A stretch of DNA of 64,000 nt from Camelus dromedarius (lineage: Eukaryota): NCBI RefSeq assembly GCF_036321535.1, contig NC_087472.1, positions 77,314,001 to 77,378,000 of the forward strand, written 5' to 3'. The stretch's first letter is position 1. The number at the start of each line of letters is the position of its first letter. This document shows positions 1 to 63,196 of this stretch, in pieces. A program made the position numbers and the translations under genes. The notes under the pieces are model-generated. The model had not been told where the DNA came from, searched no databases, and was given only the letters and a program-made list of their open reading frames with translations.

Positions 1-21251
<21,251 letters not shown>

Positions 21252-47284: not shown

Positions 47285-49659
47285 CTACACCGGACCATCT
47301 GCAGGGTCTGCAAGTGAGGAAAAGAGAGAAAGCATTGGCTGGATCCATATGTCCATTTTACAGATAAGACTACTGAAGCTTAAGATACTTCTTGGCAATA
47401 AAGTCTTACGTGCCAATAAGGGACAGAGTTGGCATTCACGCCCTTGAAAGACTCATTTCCTTCTCAGCCCTCTTAGCAACACCCCCTCCCACACACAGAC
47501 ACTTACCAGTAGGGGCTGCTGTATGTCTTTGCTGCCGCAAGGGGAAGGTAATGTAGGCATCATAGCCAAAGAGGCCTGCGGCGACTAGGCCCAGTACCTG
47601 GAATGGGGATGGGAATGAGAGGGGTTGGATTAAGCTGATAAGCCTACTCAACCTCTTACCTCCTGGTATCCACCACCTCCAGTGACTGCCCCCACACAGG
47701 GGTGGTGACTAAAGCCCCAGGTTGGGAAGCCAGAGAGCCCGAGGGAAAGGCCAGAAGACTGAACTGTACCCCACCCTCCCTCTTCCTAGTACCTCTCAAC
47801 ACAGTGCAGCCACACAGTGGCCCCACATATAGGTGGAACCATTCATACTGTACAGTGAGACAAAGCTTTAGCAGATGGTAGTCTAGCGTGATGACAAAGG
47901 GGCCACCTCTTTGTGCTTCACACAAAGGTCCCCATGTTGGACAAGGGATGCCCCTTTACACCAAATACGACTTGGGGAGAAAAAACAGGGCCTGGGTCAG
48001 AGTTTCCTGCAGACCCTGAGGACAAAGGTGACCTACTGTAGGTCACACACTTCCTGGCAGAAGCAGAGGCAGAAATGGCCCCAGGATCCTCAAACCCCTC
48101 TCTCTATGCTTTGGAGCAGATTCTACAGCCTTTACCCCTGCGGCAATTTTGGAGTTGTTTCCTCTCTCAACAAGCACAACAATGGAGGTGATCAGGTAGA
48201 GGATGACTGCTATGAGGGTTCTGAAGAAATCCTGTGATGTGCAGGGAGAAAAGAGAAGTCAGTATCCAGAATTCCCTCTACAATACCACCTTCCCAGACC
48301 CCTCCCTAGCCTGGCCATTGTGGCCCCTTTCTCACACTCCAAGGCCAGTTGATGATCAGTATCTTGGTGTGCAGGTCACACATGTAGACGACAAAGAAGA
48401 TGGCAGCAAAGATCATCTCAATCACAGACAGGAAAGAGTATTCTGATGCTGAGGCACCGAAGCAGATCAGAATCACCAGGCACAGTATCTGGAAGAATGA
48501 CACGTGAAAGGGGACCTCCATCAACTCCCAGGGCGGAGAAGATTGGTTTAAATTGGGAGTTTCAGACTCAGATGCCTACCAGGACTGGGAAGATGGCAAA
48601 TAATAATAGCTAAACAGTTATTGTGTGCACACTGTATTCCACATATTGTTCTAAGAGTTGTACAAGTATTAATTCGTTCAGTCATCACAACAACCTAATG
48701 AGCTGTGTACTATTAGTAGCGTCTTTATCTTATAGATGAGAAAAGGGAGGCACAGAGACAGACATTAAGTGATTTGTCCAGGGTCACCCAACTAGTAAGG
48801 GATAGGGTTGTGCGCATCAGTTTCTCCCCTTTTCCCTTCTGGAATAGTGGCAGCCTTCGGAGAGTGGTGCCTTCAGGTGTTTTTTGTAAGCACTGCCAGC
48901 ACCAGCTTCAGGGCTTTTGACGGGGCGGGACGTGCGGTTCCCCCGGCAACCCCTTTGAGAAGCGGTGAGTGTCACACCGAAGGGGCAGAGCTCAGTTAAA
49001 GGCGCCGCACCCCTTTTACAAGTGACTCAAAAACGGCGCCCACTTTGAGAGGGGCGATAAGCCGAGGTTTCCAAGCGGCCCAAATATCTAAACACCTCCC
49101 GCCCCACCACAGAAGGGCGAGGAAGAACTTGGGAAGGGCGGATCGCCCTGCCCTGCGGGACTAGCGCGCGGGGCCCCACCCCAAGAGGTCCCGCCCCTGG
49201 GCGCTCTGCCAGCCCGCCCGCCAGTGCCCAGGCCGCACCACGCCCTGTCACGGGAGACCCTCCTCCACCTCCCAGCCCGTGGGGACCCCTTGGATGAGTC
49301 CACCGTGTATCCCTCCACGGGGCCCCGCAAATGCCCTATGGGCCTCTTGTCTCACCCCGTGGGTCAGCAGCTCCCAACCACCTTCAAACTTCACTGACCC
49401 GCCCTGCGCCCCTGGTTTCGGGCCTCCGCCACCAATCTACCCACCCCGCGCCCCACGGCGCAGAGCCCCTCACCACGCGCCTGCCTCCCCTGGGGCTGTC
49501 CGGATCCGCGTGGTCCAGCCACCCCACCCACCTTTGCCCACCCGCCTGTCCCGGGACGCTCACAATCTCAGAAAACAGGAGAATCCCCTTTCGGGTGCGC
49601 GAGAAGTTGGTGCAGGCGGCCCAGCAGCCGGGGGCCGAGAGGCGCTCGGAATCCGCCAT
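47285..49659 (-). CDS. PLP2: Proteolipid protein 2 (A4, MARVEL domain), complete, 152 aa
   Basis: Minus-strand exons 49564-49659, 48336-48488, 48136-48231, 47507-47597, 47285-47307. Translates MADSERLSAPGCWAACTNFSRTRKGILLF...TDPADGPV*. Confidence 0.98.
48600..48810 (-). mobile_element. MIR SINE in PLP2 intron 1
   Basis: ttatagatgagaaaagggaggcacagag...aagtgatttgtccagggtcacccaactagtaag. Confidence 0.7.
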
Positions 49660-50000
49660 GGCGTGGACCGGAGCCCGTAGGGGCGCAGAGGATCTGCTCG
49701 CTTGCTCGTGCGTTCGAGGACGCTGCACACCCAGCAGTCTTGCCCGCCGTCTGGCCGGGAAGGGGGCCCCGGGGCGAAGGAGGGAGTGAATCACCGCGCG
49801 GAGTAGAAGCGGGCGGGGCCGAAGCAGGCCGGGCCAGGTGGCTGCCGCCCCGGAAGCCCCCTCGCCCCGCCCGCCTAGGATACTCCCCGCCCGGCGCACA
49901 GCCCCCCAGGGCGCTCTATCTCCGGGACCGCCAGCCTCTGAGGCTTGGCAGTTCTGCGTGCCATGTGTTGCAATGGAGAGATCTTTCACGCTTTTAGAAT
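49000..50000. promoter_or_regulatory. PLP2 CpG-island promoter and intron 1
   Basis: CpG-dense with GC boxes; AP-1 site TGACTCA at 49023-49029; boundaries approximate. Confidence 0.75.
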
Positions 50001-50084
50001 ACAAACGCGCCTGGGGCTGCCTCAACTCAGAACCGTGGGGATTTCGCTTTGGAGGGGGAATGCCTCAGTTTCCTTAGTTGTAAA

Positions 50085-53188: not shown

Positions 53189-56100
53189 TCAGTGCCTCCG
53201 CCTTCCGGCTGCCATCTCCAAGGCTAGCTGCGCGGTCCCCGGGACCCCTAGAGCCTGCGAGAGCCGTTCCTCACTTGGCACCAGCCAGGGTCCAGGGGAA
53301 TCTGGGGTTTGGTCTTCCGGGTCCCTCGTGCGGGGCTCACGAGCAGGAACGGCGGGGCCGTCGGCTGCCCCTTCTGGGCTAGGCTCCGGGCTGCCCTGGG
53401 TTTTGGGCGTCGTATAGGGTCGAGGGTGCTGAAGTGGGGAAGCGCTGGCGCTGTGAGACCTCATCACCTCTGGTTCCCCAAGATTTGGGCTTTGATCTGG
53501 GGATGGCAAGACTGCGGGTTAGATTGGGCGATAGGGTGGGGAAAGGAGGTCGGGATCCCTTGGCCATGGATGGCCGGGAGACTCCAAAGGCTGCCGGAGG
53601 CAGCGGCCCCGGTACTTAGAGAAACCTCCCTTCAAGGCATGGACATGCCCTTCGGGAACCGATGCCACCCCTCAAGACCCGACACCTCCTTTCCCAAGAC
53701 CCCTCCCCTCCTGGATCCAGAACACTCCCCTCAGAAATCAATTCCAACAACCCCCAAAGGAAATCAAATCCCTCCCATCTAGGATCCCAGACTTTCTCCT
53801 TGCTCATCCTACCTTCTTCAACTCCCAACCCTTTCTCTTACCCCTCTCTGGGTCTCTCTCTGACCCCTCTCCTTTTGGGACTAGACCTCCTACTTTCTGG
53901 ATCCCCATCCCATCCCCTCTCTCTTTAGAGCCACTCTTCCTTCCCATCCAAGGACCACGACCCTTCCTTCTGAATACCCACTTTTATCCCAAACCCCTTC
54001 ATTCCTCTTCCCTTCTAGTACTTCAAAAACCACCCTTCTGGAAATCCACCTTTATTCCTATCCTGTGACCCCGCCCTCCCCACCGCAACTTTGGAGACTA
54101 TCATGACCCTCACAAACACTGAAGCCTCGACCCTCCCCATTGAGACCACCAAACCCTTCTCACCCAGGACACCAGCCTCACCACTCTGCGACCCCCTTTC
54201 CCCCTCACAGATCCTTGACCCCTCTCTTCCTGGGAAACCCACCATCTTCTTTCCGGGGCCCTCCCACCCCCTCAGGCTTGCTGGCGTGGGTCTCAAGAGG
54301 CCTGCTTAGCACGAGACAGAGCCTGGGGCCGCCTGCACGAATCCGCTCCATGACCTGGGCATGGGTGAGGCCTTGAGTTGACTCTCCATTGATGTGGAGC
54401 ACTAGATCACCGACCTGTAAGAGTGCAAGGCAAGGGGTGTTGTAGGAAGGGCAAAATGGAGAGCACACTGACAAAGGGCAAGGACAGGGCTAGCACCGTC
54501 GAATGGGCGGTGCCTTACAGTTCACCTGCAAGCGGCCGCAGCGCTGTGCCGGCCCGTCCTTCAGCAGCCCGCGCACTGCCAGCGGAGCGTCCGCGCCTGC
54601 ATCTCGGCCTCCACTAAATGTGAGGCCAAAGCCCGCAGAACCCCGAACAAGTTCCACACAGAATCGACCAGAGGTCTGGGACGGCTTCGAAGCACAACGT
54701 GCCTTACCCTGCGTCACTTGGGGCGGTGCGGTACGTGCACCCAAGGTCTCTGGCCGACGGTGCTGGAGTAAGGACACAAGTGTACATGTGAGTGCCAGTC
54801 TCGAGGCAAGTGGCCTCGATTAGGAGGGCGAGGTGGTACCTGGGGCCGATGTTCCATGAAAGTGGCATTGGGAAGGCGACTGTCTGTGACCTCTATGTCC
54901 GCAGAATCGAGCACGCTAATGGCTGGGGGACGAAAGAGGCAGTCGGCAGAGTACGATACGGAAACCATCTAGGATCTGCTAACTGAATTAATATACTAGC
55001 CTCAGCTCATTTCCTTCCCCCTAGAAAGCACAGACTTGCCTATCTATTTAACTAGGCTCCGCCCCCACGAATAAGTATCCAGATCCCGCCTTCTTAACTA
55101 ATAATCTTGGAACTGAATAACCCTCCAGACCTTCCTACTTTCTTCTAGTAATACGAAGATCCCGCCTCTCATATTAAACCCGTAGCCCCCACCCTGGAAA
55201 GAGCTACTCTCGGATTCGGCTGCTGAAGATTCCAGGGCCCGCCCTCTTATTAGCCTATGAACCTCAACCTCTCCTTGACATTTCAAGACACGCCCCCAGT
55301 GCGTTTATAGGCTCCACCCCTTGACTACTAGTCTAGGCCCGCCCCGTAACTAAATCCCCATTCTCTACCCTCTCCAGGCTCTGCCTCCTCAGAAATGCCA
55401 CTCGAAACCCAGCTGACAAAAGACAGATCCAATCCCGCACCAACGATGAATCTTGCAACGTTCACCTACTGCAATAACCCTCTCTGTGTCACCTCCTAGA
55501 GGAATATTCTAGGATAACCCCAGCCGCCTCGAATCGCCGCCGAGCCCCGCCCTCCCAACTCACGCCCATGGGCCCCACCCAGCGGAGTAACTAGCAATCC
55601 CGGGCCCGCCACCTCAGAACCCAGCGCCACTCCGGCCACGCCCTCCAGGAGGCCCAGCCCCCATCACGCACCCTCCTTGGGGCGCAGGCGCAATGAAACG
55701 CCGGCCCTGCGAACCAGCGCCGCCACGTCGGCCGCGGCTCGGGCCGCCAGGGGGCGCGCGTCCAGCCGCGCCAGGAGCTGCCGGGCGCTGGGGCCCGCGG
55801 GCGGGGAAAGGCCGCGGCCTGCGCGAGTGAAAAGAACAGATCAGCGCCCACCCTGAGCCTCAGCGAGCCACCACACCCCCGACGATCGAAGACCTAGTAT
55901 GCCCCTCAAGATCCCCGGGGACCGAGACCACGCCCTCCGTAGTTCCAGAGGTCGCCGACTGTCCCTCTCACCTCCCGCGATCCCCGACCATCGCGGGTGT
56001 GCCCGTGGACCCCCCGCCTGGCCCCACGATATCCCTGGAGATAGCTGTTTAACCTCAGTACTCCTGGACACCTCCGAACACCCCGCAAATACCTCTGGAG

Positions 56101-56707
56101 GTCTCCGACTGCCCCCTTGTAACCCCGGACTACAAACTCTCCTCCCCAATATGGAGAGGGACCTAGATTTCCCCCAGATGTCCCGACAGAACACGGTCTG
56201 CCCCCCACCCCAGTGGCCGCGGCACCCCCGAGTCCCATTCCAGATATCCTAGGCAACCCTGACGGCCCACGTGGCCCCAGAGTGCCCCCTCCACACATCT
56301 CCAGAGGCCCCCCGCCTCACCCCCCAAAATGCACCACAGACCCTGAGTGCCCAGGTGTCCCCAGTGACCCGGGCAGACCCCTCTGACACATCTCCCCCGA
56401 GATTCCCGAGAGCCCCCGGGTCTGGTGCGCTGCCCCGCAGCGCGGGTGTGGGTGCGGGTGCAGGTAGGGGGCCTCGAGCCCAGCCCCGGTCGCTGGGCCC
56501 CTGCCCTCTACGGCCGCCGCCCGCCCGCCGCCGCCGCCGCCGCCGCTTGGGCGCCAGGGCTGCTTTGTTTACCACCTGTCGCAAGGAAAAGGTGAGGAGC
56601 AGACAGGCGGGGCGAGGGCTGGCAGGGACGCGCCCGCTCCCTCCCCCCCGCCCCGTACCTCCTCTGCTCCGCCTAGGGTCCGCGGCGCCCCCCGCAAGCC
56701 GCTCCAT
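53189..56707 (-). CDS. MAGIX: MAGI family member, X-linked (PDZ domain protein), complete, 336 aa
   Basis: Minus-strand exons 56659-56707, 55672-55818, 54840-54922, 54526-54762, 54243-54414, 53189-53511 (1011 nt, in frame). PDZ signature VELVRGSAGFGLTF...GPAQRCGRLQVGDLVLHINGEST; C-terminus EMAAGRRRH. Confidence 0.96.
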
Positions 56708-57388
56708 GACCAGGAGTCGGCGGGGTGGACGCACGGCCGCCAGCGACGCGTTTGGAGCGCCCGGGCGCGCTCACCTGGCGGCCCGCCCGGGCCTGGACGC
56801 GGCTGAGGCCGGCCGGTCCCGTGCCCGGCGCCCCGACCAGCGCCGTGACCTACCTGGCGGCCGGCAAGGAGGCCAGGCTGTGGGAGCCAGCGCGAGCGCT
56901 TGGCCTCGCTCTGTCTCAGGCGCTGCCTCTGTTTCCCAGGACCGTGGGAAACCTCTTTCCACCCAGGGGATGTTGTTACTCCTCTGGTGAGAAGGGGAAG
57001 TCGAGGCCCAGACAAGTTAAGGGCCCCACCTGAGCTCTGACAACTACCAAGGGGATCCAGAACCCGAACCCAAGTTTACCAGGGTGTTCTGCCGCCTCCA
57101 ACAGAGCTTTGCACAGCCTAGGCACTCAGTAACTTTGCAGTGAATGCTTGCCTCAGCTGGTCCCTACTGGGGAACTGGAAGAGTGTGGTGGGCTGGGGAG
57201 GGTGGCGCCCTTGGAGCCTTTGGGGTCCATGGGAGGCTTGGAGGCCCTGAGCAGGATAAGGTTTGGGGACTCAAAAAGTAGGGAGGGGAAGGCCCCCTGG
57301 AGAAGGAGGGGCGGTAGGGGCCTGGACTTGAGGAGGCTTTGAAGGCACGTTGGTGGGAGGGGACGCCAGCCAGTGAGAGGTGAGAAAT
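55455..57388. repeat. Left arm of large inverted repeat (MAGIX promoter, exons 1-2, part of intron 2)
   Basis: Base-by-base reverse complement of 58663-60678. Confidence 0.97.
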
Positions 57389-59343
57389 GAAGTCCTGAAC
57401 GCCAGATTAGAAGCTGCCATTTCCATCTTCAGTGCGCGAAGTCTCAATAAGAACAGAGCCAGGCAGAGAGTAAGTTACCTTGTCTGGGCCTCTGTTTCCT
57501 AATTTAAAAAATTAGGGAATAATAATTGTGCCAGTGTTGGCTTATTTCTCCTTCCACAAGCCATAGGTAAGAAGTTTACATAGCATTATACAAAGCAAGC
57601 ATCCTGGCTTCTTCGAAGAGAAGGTGGGCAGATGCGGGCATCTTCTGCTGGGGATCCTGGGAGCTCACACATCAGCTGTACTTCCAGGGATAGCCAAGAG
57701 GGACACAGCAGATCCCAGTTCAGGCAGGCAGACGACCAGAGGCCAATGATCCCGGTGACCGGCACTGCCCTGCATAATTGGTGACATCCCCGGGGGAGGG
57801 AGAGGGGACTGGGCCCTAGAGGAGAGAGAGGCAAGGCTTCCTAATGGAGGAGAGGACATGGATGCTTAGGTCTCAGCCTTGGTTTTTCTCCTCAACCGAA
57901 TTTTCTTGGGAAGACTTAGGAAAATAAATCAGCCTGGACTCTTCCCCACAGACAGAAGCACTTTGGTTTACAATTCTTCATAGTCAATCATACACCATCT
58001 GCATATGAACATGTGTTCTTTCTTTGTTTCAGAAAGAGAAGAATGGACGATTGGAGTCTTTGAACTGGGCCTTGATAACATGCAGTGGTGGACAAATGTC
58101 AGAAAAGGCCTCCCAGGGAGAGGAACAGCATGGGCAAAGGCAGGGAGGTGAGAATAACAGAGGGCCTATTTGGGGATCTGTGAAAACCCCATGTAGTCAC
58201 CACGAGAACAAGGCAGAGGAGGGAAGGAGGTCCAGTGTGCCCCTCTTCAGACAAGGTCAGGTCAGAGATGGGAGGGGCATGAGATTGCAGGAGGAATGAA
58301 AGCAAGAGAACAATCAGCCCTTTCACCTACCACAACACTGGGACCCTGCGAAGTGGATGAGAGAGGCTGTCCAGCCAGCCAGAATGGATGTCAGGACACA
58401 GTGCATCTACAGCCCATAGTGGAACAGGAACTGGACCAAGGAAGTGTGCGGAGTAAGCTGCCAAATCCAGGGCTATTGTTGGCTGGCTATGGGGCCCTGA
58501 GCCCCTCCTGCCCTGTTTCTTCCTCCACAAAATGGTGGCCACAGACCTTCTCTCACTGCACCCCATTCGTCCTTCCACTATAGTAGCACTGTGTAAATCA
58601 CTCTCCCACTTGGGCCTTCAGCTCCGGATACCCCACCCCTTTTCAAACCTAGAAAGGACCTTATTTCTCACCTCTCACTGGCTGGCGTCCCCTCCCACCA
58701 ACGTGCCTTCAAAGCCTCCTCAAGTCCAGGCCCCTACCGCCCCTCCTTCTCCAGGGGGCCTGCCCCTCCCTACTTTTTGAGTCCCCAAACCTTATCCTGC
58801 TCAGGGCCTCCAAGCCTCCCATGGACCCCAAAGGCTCCAAGGGCGCCACCCTCCCCAGCCCACCACACTCTTCCAGTTCCCCAGTAGGGACCAGCTGAGG
58901 CAAGCATTCACTGCAAAGTTACTGAGTGCCTAGGCTGTGCAAAGCTCTGTTGGAGGCGGCAGAACACCCTGGTAAACTTGGGTTCGGGTTCTGGATCCCC
59001 TTGGTAGTTGTCAGAGCTCAGGTGGGGCCCTTAACTTGTCTGGGCCTCGACTTCCCCTTCTCACCAGAGGAGTAACAACATCCCCTGGGTGGAAAGAGGT
59101 TTCCCACGGTCCTGGGAAACAGAGGCAGCGCCTGAGACAGAGCGAGGCCAAGCGCTCGCGCTGGCTCCCACAGCCTGGCCTCCTTGCCGGCCGCCAGGTA
59201 GGTCACGGCGCTGGTCGGGGCGCCGGGCACGGGACCGGCCGGCCTCAGCCGCGTCCAGGCCCGGGCGGGCCGCCAGGTGAGCGCGCCCGGGCGCTCCAAA
59301 CGCGTCGCTGGCGGCCGTGCGTCCACCCCGCCGACTCCTGGTC

Positions 59344-60469
59344 ATGGAGCGGCTTGCGGGGGGCGCCGCGGACCCTAGGCGGAGCAGAGGAGGTACGGGG
59401 CGGGGGGGAGGGAGCGGGCGCGTCCCTGCCAGCCCTCGCCCCGCCTGTCTGCTCCTCACCTTTTCCTTCCGACAGGTGGTAAACAAAGCAGCCCTGGCGC
59501 CCAAGCGGCGGCGGCGGCGGCGGCGGGCGGGCGGCGGCCGTAGAGGGCAGGGGCCCAGCGACCGGGGCTGGGCTCGAGGCCCCCTACCTGCACCCGCACC
59601 CACACCCGCGCTGCGGGGCAGCGCACCAGACCCGGGGGCTCTCGGGAATCTCGGGGGAGATGTGTCAGAGGGGTCTGCCCGGGTCACTGGGGACACCTGG
59701 GCACTCAGGGTCTGTGGTGCATTTTGGGGTGTGAGGCGGGGGCCTCTGGGGATGTGTGGAGGGGGCACTCTGGGGCCACGTGGGCCGTCAGGGTTGCCTA
59801 GGATATCTGGAATGGGACTCGGGGGTGCCGCGGCCACTGGGGTGGGGGGCAGACCGTGTTCTGTCGGGACATCTGGGGGAAATCTAGGTCCCTCTCCATA
59901 TTGGGGAGGAGAGTTTGTAGTCCGGGGTTACAAGGGGGCAGTCGGAGACCTCCAGAGGTATTTGCGGGGTGTTCGGAGGTGTCCAGGAGTACTGAGGTTA
60001 AACAGCTATCTCCAGGGATATCGTGGGGCCAGGCGGGGGGTCCACGGGCACACCCGCGATGGTCGGGGATCGCGGGAGGTGAGAGGGACAGTCGGCGACC
60101 TCTGGAACTACGGAGGGCGTGGTCTCGGTCCCCGGGGATCTTGAGGGGGGGGGGGGGGAGGGGGGGACGGGGGGGGGGGAGGGGGGGCTGGTCGGAGCGG
60201 GGGGGGTCGGGGGGGGGGGGGGGGGGGGGGCTCGCGGAGGGGGGGGATCGTCGGGGGTGTGGTGGCTCGCTGAGGCTCAGGGTGGGCGCTGATCTGTTCT
60301 TTTCACTCGCGCAGGCCGCGGCCTTTCCCCGCCCGCGGGCCCCAGCGCCCGGCAGCTCCTGGCGCGGCTGGACGCGCGCCCCCTGGCGGCCCGAGCCGCG
60401 GCCGACGTGGCGGCGCTGGTTCGCAGGGCCGGCGTTTCATTGCGCCTGCGCCCCAAGGAGGGTGCGTGA
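59344..60469 (+). pseudogene. MAGIX: Partial inverted copy of MAGIX (exons 1-2 only); pseudogene or 67-aa mini-gene
   Basis: Exon 1 59344-59392 and exon 2 60315-60461 are identical to the minus-strand gene with intact splice sites; homology stops in intron 2; in-frame TGA at 60467-60469. Confidence 0.8.
59505..59540 (+). repeat. (GCG)7 / CGG-type repeat in MAGIX intron 1 (mirrored at about 56511-56546)
   Basis: gcggcggcggcggcggcggcgggcgggcggcggccg. Confidence 0.8.
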
Positions 60470-60699
60470 TGGGGGCTGGGCCTCCTGGAGGGCGTGGCCG
60501 GAGTGGCGCTGGGTTCTGAGGTGGCGGGCCCGGGATTGCTAGTTACTCCGCTGGGTGGGGCCCATGGGCGTGAGTTGGGAGGGCGGGGCTCGGCGGCGAT
60601 TCGAGGCGGCTGGGGTTATCCTAGAATATTCCTCTAGGAGGTGACACAGAGAGGGTTATTGCAGTAGGTGAACGTTGCGAATATTGGACTTCCTGTTTT

Positions 60700-60970
60700 C
60701 AAGACCATCCTCTGAGCCACTGTACTATTCTGCTTTCCAAACATTGTTACTATGTCCCATTTCATTTAATTATATGTATACTTTCACATTTAAAGGCTCT
60801 AGTATATTTGCTCCATTCAAGCCATGTGCTGTAACTCATTTAGCCCATCCCCTAATGTTGTTCATTTAAGTGGTCTTCAAGCTTTTGCTACAATAAATAA
60901 TACTCTGATGAATCTTGTATAAATTTTTTTTGCACATCTTCGATGATTTCCTTGGGAAGAATTTTTAGCA
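60700..60970 (-). mobile_element. Ancient LINE-1 (L1M-type) fragment abutting the right palindrome arm
   Basis: catcccctaatgttgttcatttaagtggtcttcaagcttttgctacaataaataatactctgatgaatcttg. Confidence 0.55.
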
Positions 60971-61207
60971 GATTTGTAGTATTCTTTCTTATGACTATTT
61001 AAGTATCAGTCTCTTAAGGTCCTACACAAGAGTAGTCTATCTCATTAATCTTCTGAAGCCTTAGGACCTGGCTCTCACGACATATTTAAAGTTGGTAGGA
61101 ATTGTTTCTGCTTTTGTTTTTGTTTTTGTTTTAATATCCATTTAAGTGTCATTGATCCCCGCTGGAGTAGGAGCCTCTAGAGAGGAGGCCCCTCTATTTT
61201 ATTAATA

Positions 61208-61412
61208 CAGTTGACCCTTGAACAAAGGGGGGTTAGGGCAGCGACCCAGTGCAGTCTAAAATCCCCATATAACTTTAGTCTCCCCTCCATGTTCCACATC
61301 CTTGGATTCAACCAATCTTGCATCATGCAGTACTGTAGGAGGTAGTTAGTGACAGATACCCACATATAAGTGGCCCCTTGCAGTTCAAACCATGTTATTC
61401 AAGGATCAACTG
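61208..61412. mobile_element. Tigger2-family non-autonomous DNA transposon (TcMar)
   Basis: Terminal inverted repeats CAGTTGACCCTTGAACAA and TTATTCAAGGATCAACTG (16/18 match), flanked by TA on both sides. Confidence 0.85.
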
Positions 61413-61639
61413 TATCTGAATCCAGAATTTGTCCAGTATTAAATCTGTCACGTGTAGGCACCATTTACATGTCTATTTTTTATTATCGTACACAACTGGC
61501 ACTCACAGATGTTTCTCTTAATGACTTTTGTTACCTACACTTCCCACACCAGTAGGGCAGAATAACGAGCACACAGTAAACGCCTACAGGAAGGAATCAA
61601 TACTTGGCAAGAACGAACCCACCTTCTATCAAGCCTACC

Positions 61640-61865
61640 TCCTCCAAGAACTACATTTCCCGGTATGCTTGGCGCCACGCTCTCCTGTGACGTAAAAAGA
61701 GCGGCAATTACTTCCTATGGCCCCTTAGCCTTTGACCACCAGTGCCGCACTGTTTCACGGGTAAAGTAGTTCTAGCGCTCGTGGTCCGCCCCCCGGAAAA
61801 GTGAGAACAAACTAAACTTCCCATCAAGCAGCGCTCCGGCCTGGGAAGAGGGGCAAGATGGCGGA
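61640..61865 (+). promoter_or_regulatory. GPKOW housekeeping-type promoter with ZNF143/THAP11 motifs and YY1 site
   Basis: ACTACATTTCCCGGTATGC 61650-61668, ACTAAACTTCCCATCAAGC 61811-61829, a weaker minus-strand copy at 61752-61770, and YY1 CAAGATGGCGG over the ATG (61854-61864). Confidence 0.75.
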
Positions 61866-62969
61866 CGCTGAAGATGGTATATTGCGGCCGGCGAGAGCCT
61901 CCAGCGTCCCAATTTCATTCAGCTTCAGTCGAGTATCTGCCCGGATTCGGCTGGCGGGAGACGGCGCGGGTGCGGCTCCGGAGGATAAGGATTTCTTGAA
62001 GACCGTGGAAGGGAGAGAGCTACAGAGGTGAAGCGCTGGGTCTTTCGTCCGTTGGAAACCAGTGCAGTGGGTGCCTGCGGGAGAGTGGAATCAGAGTTGA
62101 TTGTCTTGGTGACAGTGGCCTGTAAAGCCTAAAGCACTGCGTGAGGAAATTTCGTGGAAGCGAGAAGGCGGGAGTTAGTAGGAGAGGGGGGCGGAAATTG
62201 GACCTGTTGACCCTAGGGGTTGAAAGGAGAGGATATAATCCTGAAAGGGAGTGTCTTTAGGGCTTGGGGGGCCCTGAGGAGCCTGCGTTCTGAAAAAGGG
62301 AAAGAGGGGAGAATGACAGGACTCCTAGTGTCCCAGCTAAAGCGGTGGGGCTTGTCCAATATGGCAAGCGGGATGGAGCGGCAGATTCAGGTTGGAGGAG
62401 ACCCCCATCAGCTTAATTGGGAAAGGAGAGCCTGATACAGGGACTTCCAGAAGAGAATCAACCATCCAGGAGGCTGGTGTGGAGCCTGGAGCTGGGGAAA
62501 GAGTCCAGGCTGAAGATGGTGATTTGTAGGTCATTGTGGAAACCATGGAAGTGGGTCTTGGGGTGAATAGAGGGTCCAGAACTGAGACCGGTTCCTCAGA
62601 AGCATTGATATTTAAGTTGAGGGTGGGGCAGAGAATCCAAAGAAAGCCTCACCAGCGACCTAACAGGAGAGCCAGACAGAAGAAGGGAGGGGTTGAGTGA
62701 CTTGGGGCTGAGGGTGAGTTTGGCTCTTGTGTTTTTCCCCTGAATGAAGGGGTATGGCTCAGAACCCACTGATCGTGCTGCTTCCCCAACTTCACCCCTC
62801 TGTGTCCACATCAGTGTGAAGCCCTCAGAAGCCCCCAAGGAACTTGTCATCCCTTTGATCCAGAATGGCCATCGCAGGCAGCCACCCACCCAGGCCCCTG
62901 GACCATCCATACATCCTGAGGTCTTGGCGGATGGAATGCTGTCCCAAGCTGTGAAGGAACTCATTGAGG
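61858..62969 (+). CDS. GPKOW: G-patch domain and KOW motifs protein, 3'-partial (exons 1-2; exon 3 presumed in the gap)
   Basis: Exon 1 61858-62027 (MADAEDG...DKDFLKTVEGRELQS) and exon 2 62815-62969 (VKPSEAPKELVIPLIQNGHRRQPP...SQAVKELIE) match the GPKOW N-terminus as I recall it; canonical splice sites. Confidence 0.93.
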
Positions 62970-63056: not shown

Positions 63057-63196
63057 NNNNNNNNNNNNNNNNNNNNNNNNNNNNNNNNNNNNNNNNNNNN
63101 NNNNNNNNNNNNNNNNNNNNNNNNNNNNNNNNNNNNNNNNNNNNNNNNNNNNNNNNNNNNNNNNNNNNNNNNNNNNNNNNNNNNNNNNNNNNNNNN
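63057..63196. other. Assembly gap (140 N) presumed to hide GPKOW exon 3
   Basis: The gap starts right after a branch-like/pyrimidine stretch (ctcattgctccctccc); no exon-3-like coding sequence is visible afterwards. Confidence 0.65.

Follow-up and report, generated by a model that had tools for sequence, protein, structure and literature searches.

In humans, 26 large X palindromes have been described, and 12 of them are common to chimpanzee and macaque (Jackson et al. 2021, PMC8327919). "Large palindromes" are defined there by arms of more than 8 kb, and structural change in primate X palindromes concentrates at the centre of symmetry (PMC8327919). Large X palindromes also occur in Mus (bioRxiv 10.1101/800185). 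The FLNA-EMD inverted repeats at Xq28 correspond to palindrome P24 of the human X (PMC8327919, citing Caceres et al. 2007). In human Y palindromes, conversion keeps arm identity above 99.9% (PMC8600007, PMC3723533). Here we describe a much smaller palindrome between the genes MAGIX and GPKOW of the dromedary, Camelus dromedarius. It lies in a stretch of 64,000 nucleotides (RefSeq assembly GCF_036321535.1, contig NC_087472.1, positions 77,314,001 to 77,378,000 of the forward strand), called the window below. Positions are those of the window unless another locus is named. It is very probably a genuine, old, X-linked and gene-converted palindrome that is older than the camel/alpaca split and most likely older than the divergence of Laurasiatheria and primates.

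A repeat search of the window retrieved three exact inverted-repeat blocks (56309-57396 with 58655-59742, 55902-56312 with 59738-60148, and 55455-55887 with 60246-60678). Global alignment placed the arm limits at 55455-57396 and 58655-60678. One arm was 99.5% identical to the reverse complement of the other by BLAST, and the overall arm identity was about 99.7%. A match of more than 99% over 1.9 kb between inverted arms is far beyond chance. The arms are separated by a unique spacer at 57397-58654. It contains 1,258 bp and is poor in cytosine-guanine dinucleotides (CpG), with a guanine-plus-cytosine (GC) content of 0.51 and a CpG observed/expected ratio of 0.20. No other copies of the spacer and flanks were found within the window by self-BLAST. 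The initial annotation of this stretch had recognized the inverted arms correctly, but it ended them at 57388 and 58663 and gave a spacer of 1,274 bp. Those limits were too narrow because the reading stopped at the mismatches 57389/58662 and 57391/58660. The arms extend to 57396 and 58655, since the other camelids show this extension.

The proximal (left) arm, at 55455-57396 on the minus strand, is the working 5' end of MAGIX. It runs from the CpG-island promoter through exons 1 and 2, with intron 1 between them, into the start of intron 2. MAGIX is encoded on the minus strand. Its coding exon 1 lies at 56659-56707 (ATG plus 16 codons plus 1 nt, then a GT donor), and its coding exon 2 lies at 55672-55818 (147 nt). 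The arm continues into the MAGIX PDZ exons at 54205-54777, in agreement with the annotated gene in the public dromedary locus. The deduced start of the protein agrees with the annotated dromedary MAGIX protein (P0024). The distal (right) arm, at 58655-60678 on the plus strand, is an inverted copy of this 5' end that faces GPKOW, and it is also present in Bactrian camel and alpaca. It contains mirrored exon 1 at 59344-59392 (plus strand), with the ATG and GT donor intact, and mirrored exon 2 at 60315-60461 (plus strand). Both are identical to the left-arm exons. Outside exons 1 and 2, MAGIX is single-copy. The GC content of the arms is 0.68. The CpG-island core has a GC content of 0.78 and a CpG observed/expected ratio of 0.87 in both arms. 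GPKOW begins 1.2 kb downstream of the right arm and has the same orientation. Both copies of the MAGIX promoter and exons face outward from the spacer. The initial annotation had described this arrangement, with the CpG island and exons 1 and 2 in each arm and two promoters directed away from the spacer, and the alignment and the annotated protein bear it out.

The arms differ at few positions. The initial annotation had counted only four substitutions, and all four are present (left/right positions 56300/59750, 56321/59730, 56582/59469, and 57289/58762). Global alignment added 57389/58662 and 57391/58660, which lie on the spacer side, 6 to 8 bp inside the arm ends. The 1-nt indel and the G-rich patch that had also been reported were confirmed by the same alignment. 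The indel lies in a C/G homopolymer at left position 56308-56313. The patch, at 60149-60246 on the plus strand, contains about 98 bp of almost pure G in place of 14 bp (left arm 55888-55901).

MAGIX intron 1 contains two repeats. A degenerate, C-rich, minisatellite-like repeat of about 40 bp occupies 55900-56400 (mirror 59650-60150), and the clustered arm differences and poly-G patch of the dromedary sit inside this repeat or border on it. Both arms also have, at 56513-56546 and 59505-59538, about 11 units of a GCC/GCG triplet repeat, inside the CpG island and just 3' of coding exon 1. The alpaca has a 3-bp deletion in this triplet repeat on both arms. An Rfam scan of 54500-62500 gave no match. 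An exact look-up of an 82-amino-acid open reading frame that crosses the junction (58532-58777) gave no record. A 275-amino-acid open reading frame specific to the right arm had 0 homology matches in a protein collection that excludes raw open reading frames from mammalian contigs. The last 24 nt of the spacer gave 0 matches in a metagenome scan.

Camelid palindromes and arm-to-arm conversion

Loci were gathered from a search with the last MAGIX exon. The homologue search led to annotated MAGIX proteins, and the loci encoding them were retrieved with 10-kb flanks. The dromedary locus (L001) was retrieved from GCA_036321535.1, record CM070346.1. It is 100% identical to the window and comes from the same assembly. 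The Bactrian camel locus (L002) was retrieved from GCA_048773025.1. It contained arms at 6105-8052 and 9312-11258 with 99.8% identity. The alpaca locus (L003) was retrieved from GCA_048564905.1. It contained arms at 6105-8048 and 9312-11254, also with 99.8% identity. In both species the arms are about 1,945 bp long, the spacer is about 1,259 bp long, and the poly-G patch is absent. The outer junction sequences are letter-for-letter equal in dromedary, Bactrian camel, and alpaca. The duplication predates the camel/alpaca split, because these breakpoints are shared.

Both arms of the three camelids were placed in a six-arm alignment. About 19 substitutions and 2 indels split the camels from the alpaca, and in each case both arms of the lineage carry the change. 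Site 57347 is specific to the Bactrian camel and is likewise changed on both arms. Within species, the arms differ at 2 positions in Bactrian camel, 2 in alpaca, and 6 in dromedary, the last with one indel and the patch in addition. Camel and alpaca arms show about 23 differences, against 2 for the two arms of Bactrian camel or of alpaca. No variant stays with the same arm in all species except 57391, which lies 5 bp from the inner edge and tracks the spacer end rather than the arm. Maximum-likelihood trees unite the two arms of each species in every lineage, and this grouping has support of 100/97 to 100/100 wherever the arms are not identical. The arms have evolved in concert. Shared breakpoints together with changes on both arms of one lineage indicate repeated homogenization by gene conversion, and on the evidence of the alignment it is arm-to-arm conversion that keeps the camelid arms near-identical. 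Camel-alpaca divergence was 1.18% in the arms, 1.7 to 2.1% in the flanks, and 1.9 to 2.4% in the spacer. Among 13 polarized arm changes, 7 were weak-to-strong and 5 strong-to-weak. These counts hint at GC bias, in a small sample that is confounded by the 68% GC content and the CpG island.

The spacer is inverted between camels and alpaca. Alpaca and camel spacers can be aligned only if one of them is reverse-complemented. Positions 6105-11258 of the Bactrian camel locus align to 11254-6105 of the alpaca locus over 5,159 bp with 98.3% identity. In alpaca the two inner junctions are swapped, together with the paralogous variant 5 bp inside the arm. A flip of this kind between the two lineages is the outcome expected of crossing-over between arms. 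Spacer inversion between species has been found in about half of primate X palindromes (PMC8327919).

The initial annotation had weighed a young or gene-converted lineage-specific duplication against a fold-back misassembly and had leaned towards a real event. A fold-back or haplotig misassembly of a GC-rich dromedary region, with the right arm absent from the animal, would suit the junk-like poly-G patch in that arm and the small cluster of arm differences at 59730-59750, but the same arms, spacer length, and junctions are present in the independent, patch-free assemblies of Bactrian camel and alpaca, and whale, deer, and panda carry orthologous palindromes. Misassembly is not credible, because the same nucleotide junctions recur in the assemblies of three species, and we give it next to no probability. 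An equally negligible probability attaches to a young dromedary- or camel-specific duplication whose arms are alike only through recency. Arm identity of about 99.7% is as expected of a recent duplication, yet the junctions are the same in alpaca, which makes the event older than the camel/alpaca split. The arms are also ten times more alike within species than orthologous arms are between species, and about 21 changes common to both arms of one lineage need gene conversion rather than recency. Judged from these assemblies, the palindrome of the dromedary is a genuine structure. The preference for a real event and the suggestion of gene conversion have both held up. The words "young" and "lineage-specific" have not, as the structure predates the camel/alpaca split and has orthologues in blue whale, fallow deer, and giant panda and a decayed one in gelada. 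A comparison of the MAGIX-GPKOW interval in other assemblies had been proposed, and it recovered the palindrome in Bactrian camel, alpaca, whale, deer, and panda.

Some details of the dromedary sequence are private to it. The 14 bp replaced by the poly-G patch are present in the other five camelid arms. The proximal-arm variants 57289, 56582, 56313, and 56300 and the distal-arm variants 58662 and 59730 are absent from those five arms. The patch occurs in this dromedary assembly alone and probably reflects a consensus error, the alternative being a private expansion. The private variants are consensus errors, the stretch being very GC-rich, or else alleles peculiar to the animal that was assembled. 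The conclusion on the palindrome is unaffected by the patch and these variants.

Public DNA runs contained 0.96 of the sampled 31-mers from 57200-58900 and 0.91 to 0.92 of those from 59000-60900. Were the assembly-private variants and the poly-G patch the only sequence missing, shares of 0.963 and 0.915 would be expected. The fraction of 31-mers missing from all public runs matches the absence of the patch and private variants there. The shares fit a real structure but do not resolve the junction words. Their use as a junction test was rejected, as the junction words overlap private variants and the sampling noise is about 0.02. Palindromic reads with a missed adapter were also considered as a cause and were rejected; such reads would contain no unique spacer of 1.26 kb.

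Orthologues in other orders and the origin of the arms

Inverted copies of the same MAGIX segment were retrieved from four further mammals. The blue whale locus contained arms at 2215-4655 and 9175-11610 with 99.5% identity and a spacer of 4.5 kb. The fallow deer locus contained arms at 890-3284 and 8727-11127 with 99.1% identity and a spacer of about 5.4 kb. The deer arms extend outward at 88.8% and then 73% identity. The giant panda locus contained two blocks beside assembly gaps, with 100% and 96.7% identity and a spacer of about 7.2 kb. The gelada locus contained arms at 3575-4332 and 10732-11496 with 87% identity and a spacer of about 5 to 6 kb. The gelada arms are decayed and their boundaries are diffuse, and the inverted copy keeps a recognizable pseudo-exon 2. 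The arms are 1.94 kb long in camelids and 2.4 kb in whale and deer.

The order of sequence is shared across these loci. The GPKOW-side flank, distal arm, whole spacer, and proximal arm of the whale are colinear with gelada and panda, in the same orientation and in at least 8 blocks. The camel distal arm and spacer are colinear with the whale distal arm and the adjoining 1.1 kb of the whale spacer. From these comparisons, one origin before the split of Laurasiatheria and Euarchontoglires is likely. That split is dated to the order of 90 million years ago.

Separate duplications are the main alternative to a single origin. The camelid palindrome would then be old and gene-converted, and those of whale, deer, panda, and gelada would have come from other duplications of a duplication-prone MAGIX 5' segment. 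Arms that group by species in all trees and arm boundaries that differ between orders are compatible with this, and the same doubt is voiced for the FLNA/EMD inverted repeats in PMC8327919. However, the copy always lies upstream of MAGIX and in inverted orientation, whichever species is taken, and the blocks of the whale sequence, from the flank through the distal copy and spacer to the proximal arm, are colinear with gelada and panda, and with camel. The outward gradient of 99.1%, 88.8%, and 73% in deer is expected of an old duplication with conversion limited to its inner part. Five independent events would also be unparsimonious. We regard separate duplications as improbable.

Several observations weigh against a single deep origin. 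Trees by themselves do not distinguish one origin from repeated duplications, as arms of the same species group together throughout, and the case for one origin is built on colinearity and parsimony. Assembly gaps border the panda arms. In dugong, a second copy was not found within the 10 kb fetched, a result that is uninformative if the dugong spacer is longer. The origin cannot be placed at the placental root, because the dugong has no second copy within those 10 kb.

The panda gaps (L006) lie at 883 and 9550-9859, inside both arms, and beside a block of 882 bp in which the two arms have 100% identity. The arm identity of the panda may be partly an assembly effect. The dugong locus (L007, 11100-20400) contains a MAGIX gene that spans 12 kb, owing to about 9 kb of inserted sequence in intron 2. 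Immediately upstream of this gene is a counterpart of the part of the whale/camel spacer that adjoins the distal arm. This arrangement could be an old spacer flip, or the distal arm could lie beyond the 10 kb fetched.

An AT-rich flank follows the camelid distal arm at 60679-61600, between the arm and the GPKOW promoter. From its letters it looks like sequence of a long interspersed nuclear element 1 (LINE-1). No counterpart of this flank was found in the whale, deer, or panda loci compared. The initial annotation had drawn attention to the right junction into it, at 60678/60679, as a sign of a real event. The junction is identical in the three camelids. It is not the original breakpoint, because the arms of whale and deer extend about 350 bp deeper into MAGIX intron 2 than the camelid distal arm does. 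Compared with those arms, the camelid right junction is a camelid-specific truncation of a longer distal arm, and the LINE-1-like flank marks it.

The favoured history, of one old duplication maintained by conversion, would have run as follows. The MAGIX 5' end, with the CpG-island promoter, exons 1 and 2, and part of intron 2, would have been duplicated in inverted orientation between MAGIX and GPKOW. Since then, recurrent arm-to-arm conversion has maintained an identity above 99% between the copies in camelids, whale, and deer, and largely so in panda. Crossing-over between arms has turned the spacer round on at least one occasion, between camels and alpaca. In gelada, conversion would have ceased and the distal copy decayed. 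The camelid form would be a trimmed version of a longer ancestral palindrome, two steps from a whale-like ancestor. In one step, a single deletion would have removed spacer sequence together with 144 bp from the inner end of the proximal arm. In the other, the distal arm would have lost its outer 350 to 400 bp, where the LINE-1-like flank now starts.

Candidate link to GPKOW and neighboring genes

GPKOW exon 1 lies at 61832-62027 on the plus strand, with the canonical ATG at 61858 and an AG acceptor at 61830-61831. Mirrored MAGIX exon 1 is a candidate alternative first coding exon for this gene. In all three camelids the 49-nt mirrored exon and the AG acceptor 26 nt upstream of the GPKOW ATG are in frame. 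The join adds 25 amino acids and takes the protein from 480 (the length annotated in both camels) to 505, the length annotated in alpaca. The GPKOW models of alpaca (505 amino acids) and whale (504 amino acids) begin exactly at the counterpart of the mirrored MAGIX ATG. The distal arm may therefore contain an alternative GPKOW promoter and first coding exon. The proximal cassette would be the 5' end of MAGIX itself and the distal cassette an alternative start of GPKOW. The distal arm also contains a 67-amino-acid open frame, formed by read-through from mirrored exon 2 into the intron. It exists if mirrored intron 2 is retained; the GPKOW reading has gene-model support.

Other results tell against the GPKOW reading. 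Both camel annotations list only the 480-amino-acid GPKOW. The 505-amino-acid product was not recovered, and the first 40 MAGIX residues as a query returned only MAGIX proteins. Look-ups of non-longest isoforms (alpaca X3, warthog X2, and cattle X2) gave no record. Any function of the distal copy is dispensable in the gelada lineage, because the gelada copy has decayed.

Such a link might explain the persistence of the structure. A palindrome with arms of about 2 kb could have been kept for about 90 million years because conversion preserves one promoter-first-exon cassette for two unrelated divergent genes. The distal copy would then start an N-terminally extended GPKOW isoform with the first 16 residues of MAGIX. 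We put this joint proposal forward tentatively and think it more doubtful than probable. If true, it would be a shared 5' module under concerted evolution, unlike the usual palindromes of whole duplicated genes.

RNA-labelled public runs (X25-X38) contained 0.41 to 0.68 of the sampled 31-mers from 59000-60900, where the two exons alone would give about 0.2. Unspliced transcripts, DNA carry-over, and read-through are possible sources of the excess.

The public record is a 114-Mb chromosome that encodes GPKOW, MAGIX, PLP2 (MARVEL domain), and a PET/LIM gene in series. We take this to be the gene order known from the mammalian X, and we infer the X linkage of the palindrome from this synteny. A minus-strand open reading frame at about 49384-50025 encodes the start of a PLP2-like protein (MADSERLSAPGCW...). 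The annotation of the public locus places a 152-amino-acid MARVEL-domain gene beside the PET/LIM gene, in the order GPKOW, MAGIX, PLP2, and PRICKLE3-like.

An older dromedary RefSeq model of MAGIX (P0139, XP_031302491.1) contains 488 amino acids, and its N-terminal 160 residues are aberrant and frameshift-like. They were drawn from the CpG island/intron region. The model suggests that the MAGIX 5' region was troublesome in the earlier assembly. The window contains runs of N at 5615-5770, 8014-8174, and 63057-63196. The last is deliberate masking and not an assembly gap, because the public locus contains no N there.

Comparison with known palindromes

The arms of the FLNA-EMD repeats are about 11 kb long, against about 2 kb for the MAGIX arms. 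Human Y palindromes have arms of 9 kb to 1.45 Mb. Those palindromes are Y-linked and contain multi-copy testis genes, whereas the MAGIX palindrome is a small promoter module, X-linked by synteny. The FLNA-EMD spacer holds whole genes, and the MAGIX-GPKOW spacer holds none. Like the FLNA-EMD repeats, as described in PMC8327919, the MAGIX palindrome is X-linked (by synteny), occurs in many eutherian orders, and shows recurrent inversion of the intervening sequence. According to that paper the FLNA/EMD arms are not orthologous between all species, whereas the MAGIX arms are the same 5' segment everywhere and the spacer is colinear. Arm-to-arm conversion, paralogous variants, and rare inversions are features held in common with human Y palindromes P1-P8 (PMC8600007, PMC3723533).

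The likeness to the X palindromes of primates and Mus is close. All are inverted repeats of the X, the MAGIX one by synteny, whose arms are more than 99% identical and enclose a unique spacer. Arm-to-arm identity is above between-species identity, which indicates gene conversion. Spacers are inverted between species, and change is concentrated at the centre of symmetry. Unlike the large X palindromes, the MAGIX palindrome has arms of 1.9 to 2.4 kb, below the 8-kb cut-off. Its arms hold the promoter and two exons of a single-copy gene and not whole testis-biased families. It is conserved across mammalian orders, unlike the 25 million years of the primate X palindromes. Neither MAGIX nor GPKOW is mentioned in PMC8327919, and full-text literature searches gave no report of an inverted duplication at MAGIX/GPKOW.

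Few conserved sex-chromosome palindromes have been described, and the best set reaches back 25 million years (PMC8327919). FLNA/EMD is the only one claimed to be eutherian-wide and so the nearest precedent. The MAGIX palindrome involves the same segment in every species examined. Its arm identity is more than 99% in at least three cetartiodactyl lineages, those of camelids, whale, and deer, and largely so in panda, and the arms are decayed in the monkey. It is a compact natural experiment that can be spanned by the polymerase chain reaction and by single long reads. It may be used to ask what minimal arm length supports conversion, how often a spacer flips, and what becomes of a palindrome once conversion stops. 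It also raises the possibility that MAGIX and GPKOW share a promoter and first exon. For users of the genome, the palindrome structure of the dromedary is correct, and the poly-G patch at 60149-60246 probably is not. An arm cut-off of 8 kb in surveys misses old functional palindromes.

In arm identity, concerted evolution, and spacer inversion, the MAGIX palindrome acts as a palindrome of the sex-chromosome type. Its unusual features are the short arms, the depth of conservation, and an arm content limited to the 5' module of a gene.

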